DNA of 63,156 nt, filler included, from Reticulomyxa filosa (Eukaryota; Protista; Foraminifera), in NCBI GenBank assembly GCA_000512085.1. It is 18 parts of 18 records of this genome, joined end to end, with 100 filler letters (N's around TTAATTAATTAA, not from the genome) between each part and the next. Parts side by side here need not be neighbours in the genome. Positions count along the whole stretch, not along the records: positions 19,161 to 23,665 come from ASPP01002064.1; 17 more parts are not named here. One strand, given 5' to 3'. This document shows, piece after piece, positions 19,267 to 23,300 of the stretch. The notes under the pieces are model-generated. The model was given only the letters and a program-made list of their open reading frames with translations, was not told the origin of the DNA and searched no databases. Numbering within the stretch: position 1 is the first letter of the stretch; every line of letters starts with the position of its first letter. The position numbers and the translations under genes were made by a program.

Positions 19267-21100
19267 TCACACTGTCTTGGTCGAGACGTATAAATTCACA
19301 TCGATAGTGAGATACAACATTTTTGTTCTTCTATCCCTCGTGATATCGATCTTGCACACTTTTTCTGTTTGATTGTCTTGAATTTGAGTAATGCAGGATT
19401 GCACGTCACAAGGGAAATTTTCTGCGTCCATTTGAATATCTCCACCAGGTACAATCACAGTAAATTTATCTTTCTTTGATTGTATGTATTGCATATATTT
19501 TATGGATTGAGATGTAATTGCGATATATACCAAAAAGCGGAGTTGGACAATGATACAACATTCAGTTAATGACTTGCTCTCTGCAGCAACACGACTTTGA
19601 AAATGAGCAAAAGCATATAACAGTGCTATTGTCGGAGCCCAAGTCAATACCATTATTATCGAGGAAAAGACATTCAATTTTTGACGCTTTCATCTGGCTC
19701 CAATATTTTCATTTGGATAAAATCTTTGGATTGCTGTCTTTATTACTCAAATATACGATTACAGGAGAAGAATTGAACAGTAATGCACCAATTTCTTTTC
19801 CAGTACGTGTTGAAGATAATCGTGATCACTTTTATTGCGCCGGTACAAAAACTAGTTGATATGCAATTTTATGAGTCAGCCATTGATTCAAATGAATGGT
19901 TGTATGAATCGCATTGGTGCTAAATGAAAAAAAAGCGAGCCATTGACTACAACTGCCGTCGTTCCAGCCATCTTTGCGATACATCGTAAAGATTGTGGCA
20001 ATATTAAACATGTTGATTTGATTGTATACTTGCTTGGAGAATGGTTTGCTTGGAACGAAATTGGTTTGCTTCCCAAACATAACAAAAGTGGAGCGACAAT
20101 GGACCAGTAATTGCATTGAACGCATATGGCGAAAATGGTGATATTATAGGCCACATTAAATGCAGTAAATTCCTTGCTTTGCGCACTCCTTGCCGACAAT
20201 TCGTTTGGACAACTTTAGTATCCAGATCGCATGGATACTGGCGTTTCACAAGAAGGTGAATCAAAACGTGACCCAAATTGAAATAAAAATTCTTGTGGTC
20301 GAGTTCTTCGGCAAATACACGAAAGACTTGCAGCAAATCCAAAGCTTGATTATTATAATGTTCAAGCCCGTCCACCATACGACATTTGCTTGATTGTTTC
20401 GTATTGCAATGGAATAATTGGAATCCTCCATCCGATGGATATACCGATCAAATTTCAACAAATCGATCACATCCTATCATTATAGCAACAGATTAAATTT
20501 ACTTGATGTAAATATTGACGAAAAAAAATTGGAGCGGAGAATAAGACGAAATCCATGCAAAAGAGATCTGGTAGATGGTTGCGTAGTATAGTGACTTGGA
20601 TGGCGTGCTGAATTGTGACTAGGACTTCGGGTCTGTGAGAGACTTTGGTTGACTCCTTCGCACTAAGTGTTGTTGCCAGAATATATCGATGTTCCACTGA
20701 CAATAACACACATATCGCCTCCCCGACGTCTATAACAAATAATTTCTTGGACCAAGTAATTGGGCTTGATCATTTGACGTGTAGTTCTTTGATGGCATTG
20801 CACAACAGATTAGTTGCATTTTTTTCTTCCAATGTGAAACACTTTCAGAGCACATGCAAGACTTTTTCTCTATATGTGCAATACACCACGTTCTTCAAGC
20901 ACTTGCAAGGCTTCGGTTCCATGTCCTCTTAGTATATGTATCGCAAACAAATGTCTTGATAACAACTTTTTATTTTTATCTTCAATTTGTTTTTTTTTAC
21001 ATTTTTTTAAATTCAAAACCAATACTTGTTGTCTCTGGAACAGCTACAGCATTCACCACAATATCTTACGATAGTTTCATCGACGTCCATTAAATGCCGA
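19267..21100 (-). pseudogene. Large frameshifted gene remnant, family unrecognised
   Basis: About 1.8 kb of coding-like composition with overlapping short ORFs in alternating frames and one intron-like AT block. Confidence 0.45.
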
Positions 21101-21392
21101 CCGATCTCTTTGAATGCATTGGCTCTTTCCCTTTCTTTTTATTGACGCTTCCACACGTACATCTACGTATACTTTCTTTGCCACCTATATTTCAAAAAAA
21201 ATACTATTTTATGATTGAAAAAAAAAATTAGTGAATACACTATGATAGTATGTTAAATGAAAAGAAGTAAATTTGATATGATTTTTTTTTATTATTGGAA
21301 CTTGTTTTTGTGCTAATTCGTGTCGTCGTCTTCAATTTCTATTTTTTTATTTTAAACAAGTCAACATAAAAAAGATGTATATTTGTTTATTC

Positions 21393-22255
21393 CACTTAAC
21401 TATCCATTTGGTACCCGCATGAAATAACAATTTTTGGAGCATAGCTCCAACTTAAACAAAATATATATTCAATTTTATTTTTATTTTTCTTTATTATTTT
21501 TTTAATATATTTTTTCTTCTTTTACAACGTTTTCATTTTTTTCTTTTTCTTTTATTATTATTATTTTTTAATCACAATCTTTTATTTTTTTTCTCATTTC
21601 TTTTTCTACCCCTTTTTTTTTCACTTCCACCCTTTTTCTATCTATCATTTACTTTTTTTTCCTTCCTATTTTTTTCTATTATTTTCACTATACCCTTTTT
21701 TTTTATTATTTCCTTTTGCTTCCCCTCCCCCCCTTTCTACAATTTCCTTTCATAAAAATAGTCGAATATCTTTGTCTTTTTTTTGCAGCTGGGACATCTA
21801 TAACACAAGCAGAGTTATTTTTATATTTTTAAAGAACAACATAAAAATATATATGTACTTGTTGTTAGTGTAGATCAAGCTCCGATTTGCATTTCTTTTT
21901 CCTGGTACAAACACTCAAATTAATTTTTTTTTATTTATATAGGGTGGGGAAAAAACAACATATATTTCTTTGATGGGGGAATTCCTATTATATCACACAA
22001 CATCACATTATTTAACAAAAGAAAAATATAAAAATATAAATATAACAAACCATTAATCCTTCTTTTGGAGACTGGAGCGGCTTTCAACCCCAGTATTCTT
22101 TTTTTGTGTGTGAGGAGAAAACATGTAACATTTTTTTGTGACGGGTGGGATCCTATACAAAAGACAAAAAACAGATTAATATATTTTAAAAAATAAAATA
22201 AAGTAAACATACAATTTTGCTCCTTTCGGAGACGGGGTGTGGTTTCTACCCCATT
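21393..22255 (-). repeat. Unclassified ~0.85-kb interspersed element, copy 1
   Basis: Co-linear motifs shared with 54313-55166 and 57535-58287 (plus strand): CACTTAACT end, T-rich tract, GGGGGAATTCCTAT, CTTCAACCCC-like motif, GACGGG..GA.CCTAT and CTCCTTnCGGAGACGG...CTACCCCATT. Confidence 0.85.
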
Positions 22256-22259
22256 CTGC

Positions 22260-23300
22260 TGGTGTTGGTGTTGCTGTTGTCATCATCTCTATATTTTTTT
22301 CAATAACATACAACATACATAATGTACATTATACATTTTTTGTGGATACATTAAAAAAGTATTTACACATATATACGTATGTAAAAAAATTGTGGATATA
22401 CCACTTGGCCGTATCGAAATTGCGCACGGTCAACTGGCCATTCGTGTTGTTGTGATTGGCAGTCATTGTGCCCACGTGCCGATCATTGTGTACCTCAACG
22501 GAGTTCCACAGCCAAAGCATTGAGCCAACGCCGGCCAAACAAACAACATTATCATTATCACAATCAATAAGGCAATCATTTTGTAGACATTGACAGGTGC
22601 CAACACCAACCTTCCGCCACCTGAATCTTCAATCATATTGTTCATTGTCTTGAATAAAGACAACAGCATATCAACACTAGTCGTGTTATGATCCAATAAG
22701 CTGTTACGACTTGAAAACAGCCATATAACCTTTTCCACTTGCCATAACACTAGCAGTGCAAACAATTCCATCGCTTGTGCGTAGATTGTTGCTTCTACCA
22801 GCATTTTCATGGCCGTGCAAACTGCTATTGTGGCCATAATTGAACAAATCGTTAGTGCTTGAAGTCTATTGTACGTGTATATGTGTACGTATAAAAAATT
22901 GAAATAAGTTTTTGATTATTTTTATTAAAAATTTTTTCTCATATGTCATTTTTTTTGTTTATTTATTTTTTAATTGAATGAAATGTGCAGACGAAGTAAC
23001 TGGAACAAATAGTCACACGATATCTAGTGACACCATCTTTTTTTTTAACAGAGCCCGTGATCGGGTGAGCACGAATTGAACAAATTGTATTCGATTCGCT
23101 GTTGGTGTGCTGGTGATTGCTGTTGTAGTTGTTGATATGTTGGTTGGTGATGTAGTGGTGGCTGGTGCGATTGTGATATTCGCTGAACGTGGCCGTTGTG
23201 TTTTGTTTTGTTGGGTAGTGACGGCCAGAAGCATGTAATAATTTGAAATGGATGATTTGGATATCATCCTCAAGTGAAAATTGAAATGGCGTGTTCATTC
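22260..23300 (-). pseudogene. Cys-rich, Thr/Pro-rich (mucin-like) surface protein pseudogene
   Basis: TIAPATTTSPTNISTTTTAITSTPT, GTCQCLQNDCLIDCDNDNVVC, intron-like blocks and stops. Confidence 0.4.

Follow-up and report, generated by a model that had tools for sequence, protein, structure and literature searches.

The element described here occupies positions 21393–22255 (0.86 kb, minus strand) of the window, by which we mean the whole 63,156-nt stretch of joined Reticulomyxa filosa sequence that was analyzed, and is located on a complete contig of 4,505 bp. R. filosa is a freshwater naked foraminiferan, an amoeboid protist. The contig carries two genes for hypothetical proteins, RFI_02088 and RFI_02087, which flank the element and were placed by tblastn (Table 1). 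In the protein search, the ORF just upstream of the element showed 95% identity to RFI_02088 (hypothetical protein, Reticulomyxa filosa), and a second ORF on the same contig showed 99% identity to RFI_02087. Both genes are on the minus strand, like the element, which starts 207 nt past the stop codon of RFI_02088 and lies inside the 2,382-nt spacer between the two genes. Because the locus numbers of RFI_02088 and RFI_02087 are consecutive, this spacer contains no annotated gene. The intron of RFI_02087 is 166 nt long (19852–19687), and that of RFI_02088 is about 170 nt long. A 2026 comparison lists the R. filosa assembly with 101.9 Mb in 50,809 scaffolds (N50 of 3.6 kb), a mean intron length of 87 bp, a median intergenic distance of 426 bp, and a repeat content of 30.5% (Table 1 of PMC13746701).

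Exon 2 of RFI_02087 (19270–19686, minus strand) has a paralogue with 70% identity, the partial gene RFI_34219, on another contig of 1,008 bp. Genes of the neighborhood of the element are therefore duplicated elsewhere in the assembly, and segmental duplication of this neighborhood is a live alternative. Among proteins of 80–254 aa, no paralogue was detected with a fragment of RFI_02088 as the query, which weakly suggests that the upstream gene was not duplicated together with the element.

The region around RFI_02087 also contains an unannotated ORF of 124 aa (20007–20378, minus strand), which is long for DNA of 35% G+C and overlaps the first exon of RFI_02087 in a different frame. More minus-strand ORFs are present upstream of it, reaching an ATG near 21090 (MDVDETIVRYCGECC...). 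The 124-aa ORF had no homologue in a word search and no Pfam match. RFI_02087 may be a truncated gene model here, or a pseudogene may be present. On the other side, the flank directly upstream of the element (22256–22292, minus strand) is rich in CAA, CAC, and CAG and resembles a coding tract of low complexity within RFI_02088 exon 1 (23100–23160, minus strand), with a score of 33 versus a shuffle maximum of 24. As judged by hand, an alternative splice from GAG/GTACAC near 22499 to an AG at 22289 would extend RFI_02088 to a TAG within AATGGGGTAG. Another intron-like GT...AG segment of 78–88 nt with about 80% A+T is located directly upstream of the element (22289–22376, minus strand).

Table 1. 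Features of the element and its flanking genes, with positions counted along the window
Feature	Position	Strand	Description
RFI_02088	22463–23298	minus	Hypothetical protein, 218 aa, two exons; stop codon 22465–22463; upstream of the element; tblastn
5' block of module 1	22213–22255	minus	Starts AATGGGGTAG; GGGGT/ACCCC stem and CTCC-GAAA-GGAG hairpin at the 5' end of the element
Intron-like segment I1	22153–22212	minus	60 nt, GTATGT...TATAG; T 62%, A+T 85%; TTAAT ~25 nt before the 3' end
A/C-rich block	22051–22152	minus	Joins module 1 (3' half) to module 2 (5' half); contains TGGGGTTGAAAGCC...GTCTCC
Intron-like segment I2	21985–22050	minus	66 nt, GTTTGT...AATAG; T 58%, A+T 83%
Block	21859–21984	minus	Joins module 2 (3' half) to the doubtful module 3 (5' half)
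Intron-like segment I3	21798–21858	minus	61 nt, GTACAT...TATAG; T 46%, A+T 80%; TAAC ~20 nt before the 3' end
Short A-rich block	21740–21797	minus	Follows I3
Homopurine tract	about 21465–21739	minus	About 275 nt; A 63%, G 20%, T 16%, C 1%
3' tail	21393–21464	minus	7-bp hairpin TTGGAGC-TAT-GCTCCAA at 21450–21434; ends AGTTAAGTG
RFI_02087	19267–20080	minus	Hypothetical protein, 215 aa; exons 20080–19853 and 19686–19267; downstream of the element; tblastn

All motifs and coordinates that a first-pass annotation of this DNA had given for this copy (copy 1) were present when checked against the sequence. The element starts with its 5' motif at 22255 and ends with AGTTAAGTG at 21401–21393, and an AATAAA is located just beyond this end (21391–21386, minus strand). 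The homopurine tract (21465–21739) has the most extreme GC and AT skew in the contig, with C nearly absent from the minus strand and G, correspondingly, from the plus strand, and it is conceivable that it could form triplex DNA. The similarity of this tract to the modules was not significant. A candidate terminal direct repeat, AATGG...TAG at both ends of the element, was rejected as background because 30% of windows score as well.

The element had been described as containing three tandem modules, and this description holds for two of them. M1 (22255–22095) and M2 (22094–21912) are clearly related: their local alignment covers ~150 nt with a z-score of 6.1, none of 500 shuffles was as good, and their overall identity is about 70%. 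The size of the tandem module is about 160–180 nt. The third module is doubtful. While the M2–M3 comparison gave a z-score of 4.6, the match consists only of a 27-nt A/T-rich stretch within the 5' part of I3 (24/27 identical) plus a shared ATAG, and the z-score for M1–M3 was 3.2. A consensus pattern built from M1 and M2 matched at these two sites only, with no match expected. GGGGTAGAAA recurs at 22252, 22091 (with one mismatch), and 21612, always on the minus strand, and three matches were not obtained in any of 100 shuffles. A metagenome scan with a 19-base degenerate M1/M2 pattern yielded two chance matches (L001 407–432 and L002 1205–1230) in unrelated surrounding sequence.

The 5' hairpins (22213–22255) had a DNA folding energy of −6.6 kcal/mol (z-score −2.2, reached by 5 of 200 shuffles) and the 3' hairpin (21450–21434) had a z-score of −1.55 (15 of 200 shuffles), both of which are marginal. 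The "exon" blocks between the intron-like segments are unstructured, with z-scores of +0.6 for 22051–22152 and +1.4 for 21859–21984. As a whole, the element did not fold convincingly better than shuffled sequences on either strand (z-scores of −1.7 for minus and −0.6 for plus, 20 shuffles each).

The three GT...TAG segments that had been proposed as intron-like are located exactly at 22212–22153, 22050–21985, and 21858–21798. They have canonical GT...AG ends, and their lengths of 60, 66, and 61 nt resemble those of host introns, as had been claimed, the R. filosa mean being 87 nt (PMC13746701). I1–I3 contain 80–85% A+T and 46–62% T and are set between A/C-rich blocks. On the minus strand of the contig, hardly any 60-nt windows other than I1 and I2 have T ≥ 55%. 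Branch-like TTAAT (I1) and TAAC (I3) sequences are found 20–25 nt before the 3' ends. A/T-rich GT...AG pairs are common in this region, with 42 combinations in 20928–22376 on the minus strand, and the two annotated introns of the contig are longer and, by eye, not T-rich. GT-AG ends, U-rich interiors, near-mean sizes, and plausible branch sites do not constitute evidence of splicing.

Comparison of the modules and copies bears on the same question. In the M1–M2 alignment, I1 and I2 align at both ends (GT and TAG), which is weak evidence because the two modules are about 70% identical overall. M1 and M2 resemble each other to about the same degree in their "exon" and "intron" parts, and only the "intron" aligns between M2 and M3; such similarity does not match the pattern of constrained exons. 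According to the coordinates of the first-pass annotation, the "exon" lengths are 43, 102, and 126 nt in copy 1 and 43, 111, and 117 nt in copy 2, both of which sum to 271 nt, and in copy 2 the second segment is shifted by 9 nt relative to copy 1. Such a displacement, if the coordinates of both copies hold, would sit uneasily with the claim that the boundaries are kept. Because the block sums are equal even though the second segment is displaced, the length differences are located in the low-complexity parts, a pattern that would be expected both from selection on a spliced RNA and from replication slippage. On this sequence evidence, production of a spliced non-coding RNA from the element is possible.

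The absence of a conserved ORF, another feature claimed for the element, fits copy 1. Inspection by hand found no reading frame through the proposed splice product, with stops in every frame across the junctions. One frame stays open throughout the block at 22051–22152 but meets a newly formed stop at each of the two adjoining junctions. The longest frame obtained by hand has 57 codons and reads through I1 from an ATG at 22286, beyond the shared region, to a TAA at 22056. A 91-aa unspliced ORF over the middle blocks had no match in a phmmer search of 1.84 billion protein representatives. This protein-level negative is weak, as the search covered a single frame and gene calling is usually preceded by the masking of repeats. 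Pfam gave nothing meaningful, and no Rep or helicase, for ten of the contig's larger ORF stretches. The Rfam check suggested earlier returned no family for the whole contig at E-values up to 1, and the scores for the element at E-values up to 10 were far below the gathering scores. ARAGORN detected no tRNA. The hammerhead core (CUGANGA...GAAA) is absent, as CTGANGA does not occur anywhere in the contig, and no Rfam ribozyme was matched.

We tentatively interpret the element, with somewhat less than even confidence, as an unclassified non-coding interspersed repeat that formed in part by local tandem duplication and is possibly transcribed from the minus strand. The length of the spacer that contains it (2,382 nt versus the species median of 426 nt) and the 30.5% of repeats in the assembly (PMC13746701) are consistent with this interpretation, as is the finding that the T-rich spacers are almost unique to the element on its strand of the contig. 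On the other hand, a single copy is present here, so "interspersed" depends on the first-pass annotation, which had reported two other copies, and copy 1 shows no terminal hallmark of any transposon class. Taken by itself, copy 1 looks like an ordinary non-coding spacer in which a local duplication has occurred.

The element is non-coding, with neither a recognizable protein nor a known RNA encoded in it, and its 5' half was generated by local tandem duplication of a ~160–180-nt unit. This unit comprises a block that contains G/C (TGGGGTNGAAA...GTCTCC), followed by a T-rich spacer of ~60 nt and a second block, and the duplicated units are followed by the homopurine tract and a tail with one hairpin. 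If the two other copies are real, the element would be an interspersed non-autonomous element, presumably moved by a partner encoded elsewhere. The strand-asymmetric make-up (U-rich GT-AG spacers and A-rich blocks), together with the AATAAA past the end, suggests that the minus strand may be transcribed. A considerably stronger version, in which a very high-copy element of an undescribed transposon class spreads as DNA with three functional spliceosomal introns and produces a spliced non-coding RNA, seems improbable to us.

Several features of copy 1 could also be explained without mobility. The element might be a member of a multi-copy, non-mobile gene for a spliced non-coding RNA or a micropeptide, in which case the three segments would be true spliceosomal introns and the copies would be paralogues under selection on the mature RNA. 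The canonical U-rich GT...AG segments of 60–66 nt (against the species mean of 87 nt), the branch-like TTAAT and TAAC 20–25 nt from the 3' ends of I1 and I3, and the AATAAA past the end agree with such a gene, as do the "exon" sum of 271 nt in copies 1 and 2 with variable spacers and the 57-codon frame from ATG 22286 to TAA 22056 through I1. We nevertheless consider it unlikely, since the "exons" are unstructured (z-scores of +0.6 and +1.4) and no better conserved than the "introns" in M1–M2, and only the "intron" aligns in M2–M3. In addition, GT-AG pairs around A/T-rich DNA are frequent locally, the annotated introns of the contig (166 and about 170 nt) are longer and by eye not T-rich, slippage without selection would also confine the length variation to low-complexity stretches, and the 57-codon frame begins outside the shared region. 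A by-product of gene or segmental duplication, in which a 3' untranslated or intergenic region was copied with its neighbor genes and is still recognizable only owing to the fairly recent date of the duplications, has a still smaller chance of being correct. The 70% identity of RFI_02087 to RFI_34219 on another short contig, the likeness of the flank at 22256–22292 to the coding tract of RFI_02088 exon 1 (33 versus a shuffle maximum of 24), and the alternative splice that would end RFI_02088 at the TAG within AATGGGGTAG point in this direction, whereas the lack of an RFI_02088 paralogue among proteins of 80–254 aa and the earlier report that the same end motifs mark the limits of the similarity in three contigs point away from it.

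It is also conceivable, with only a slim probability, that the architecture arose by chance, that is, that a real local tandem duplication in A/T-rich intergenic DNA bears a superficial likeness to sequences in other contigs. DNA of 35% G+C readily yields short hairpins, A-rich tracts, and GT...TAG pairs; 1.4 kb of this region contains 42 GT...AG combinations that are A/T-rich, and the hairpins are marginal. Moreover, according to the first-pass annotation, the 3' hairpin of copy 2 has an unrelated sequence, and its coordinates displace the second segment by 9 nt between the copies. The same source, however, cites end motifs of 9–10 nt that are identical in every copy and parts that follow one order, and the first block is 43 nt long in both copies 1 and 2, all of which argue against chance. 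In our view, a non-autonomous element of the rolling-circle type (Helitron, Helentron, or HINE-like) is the least probable explanation of all. The internal tandem repeats, the short hairpins near both ends, the lack of a TIR, and the lack of a clear TSD agree with this analogy, but copy 1 does not support it: neither strand has 5'-TC/3'-CTRR termini, the flanks are G/G, the 3' hairpin stops 41 nt short of the end, the ends are not linked by subterminal inverted repeats, and no Rep or helicase ORF was recognized on the contig by Pfam among ten of the larger ORF stretches.

To our knowledge, foraminiferan genomes are almost unexplored, and a limited literature search found no description of R. 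filosa repeat families. If the interspersed repeat proposed here is truly high-copy, it would represent a major and uncharacterized component of the R. filosa genome, and it would offer a test case for intron-like sequences riding on mobile DNA in Rhizaria.

Copy 1 falls outside the definitions of Helitrons, Helentrons, MITEs, and SINEs because at least one tested feature of each is lacking. Helitrons have 5'-TC and 3'-CTRR termini, while the element reads AATGG...AAGTG on the minus strand and CACTT...CCATT on the plus strand. They insert between a host A and T, with no TSD, while the element has a G on either side (22256 and 21392, minus strand). Their GC-rich palindrome is located ~10–20 nt before the 3' end, while the minus-strand hairpin of the element (21450–21434) stops 41 nt short of 21393. 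The plus strand has a 5-bp stem at a distance of 3 nt from the end, but no CTRR, which a Helitron needs, follows it. Helentrons and HINEs insert between T and T and have short subterminal inverted repeats, while the element has G/G flanks and ends that are not linked by an inverted repeat. The internal tandem repeats of Helentrons and HINEs are found in the element (M1–M2 z-score of 6.1), a feature that is not family-specific. HINEs are further similar to the element in being non-coding and in having short hairpins near their ends, no TIR, and no obvious TSD.

The earlier statement that the element has no TIR is correct for copy 1, in which no inverted repeat links the ends. This separates it from TIR transposons and MITEs, which also have a TSD of fixed length, and the sole possible shared flank is a 4-nt GAAT, which appears only if the ends are shifted. 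The element also differs from SINEs and other LINE-dependent retroposons, as it has no tRNA, 5S, or 7SL head, its A-rich tract is internal and followed by another 72 nt, and no TSD was seen. SINE-like retroposons share with the element its non-coding nature and an A-rich tract followed by a hairpin tail, with 0.86 kb being long for a SINE. Hammerhead-bearing retrozymes and Penelope-like repeats are set apart by the hammerhead core, which the element lacks. In introner-type elements, similar short GT...AG units are repeated as in this element; here, however, the similarity spans the whole module, the units are outside annotated genes, and TIR and TSD are lacking. Compared with snoRNA-host-type spliced lncRNA genes, the segments are too short and plain for snoRNAs, there is no Rfam match, and conservation between modules is no higher in the "exons" than in the "introns"; nevertheless, the element shares with these genes several short GT-AG segments, the lack of an ORF, the asymmetry of one strand, and an AATAAA near the end.
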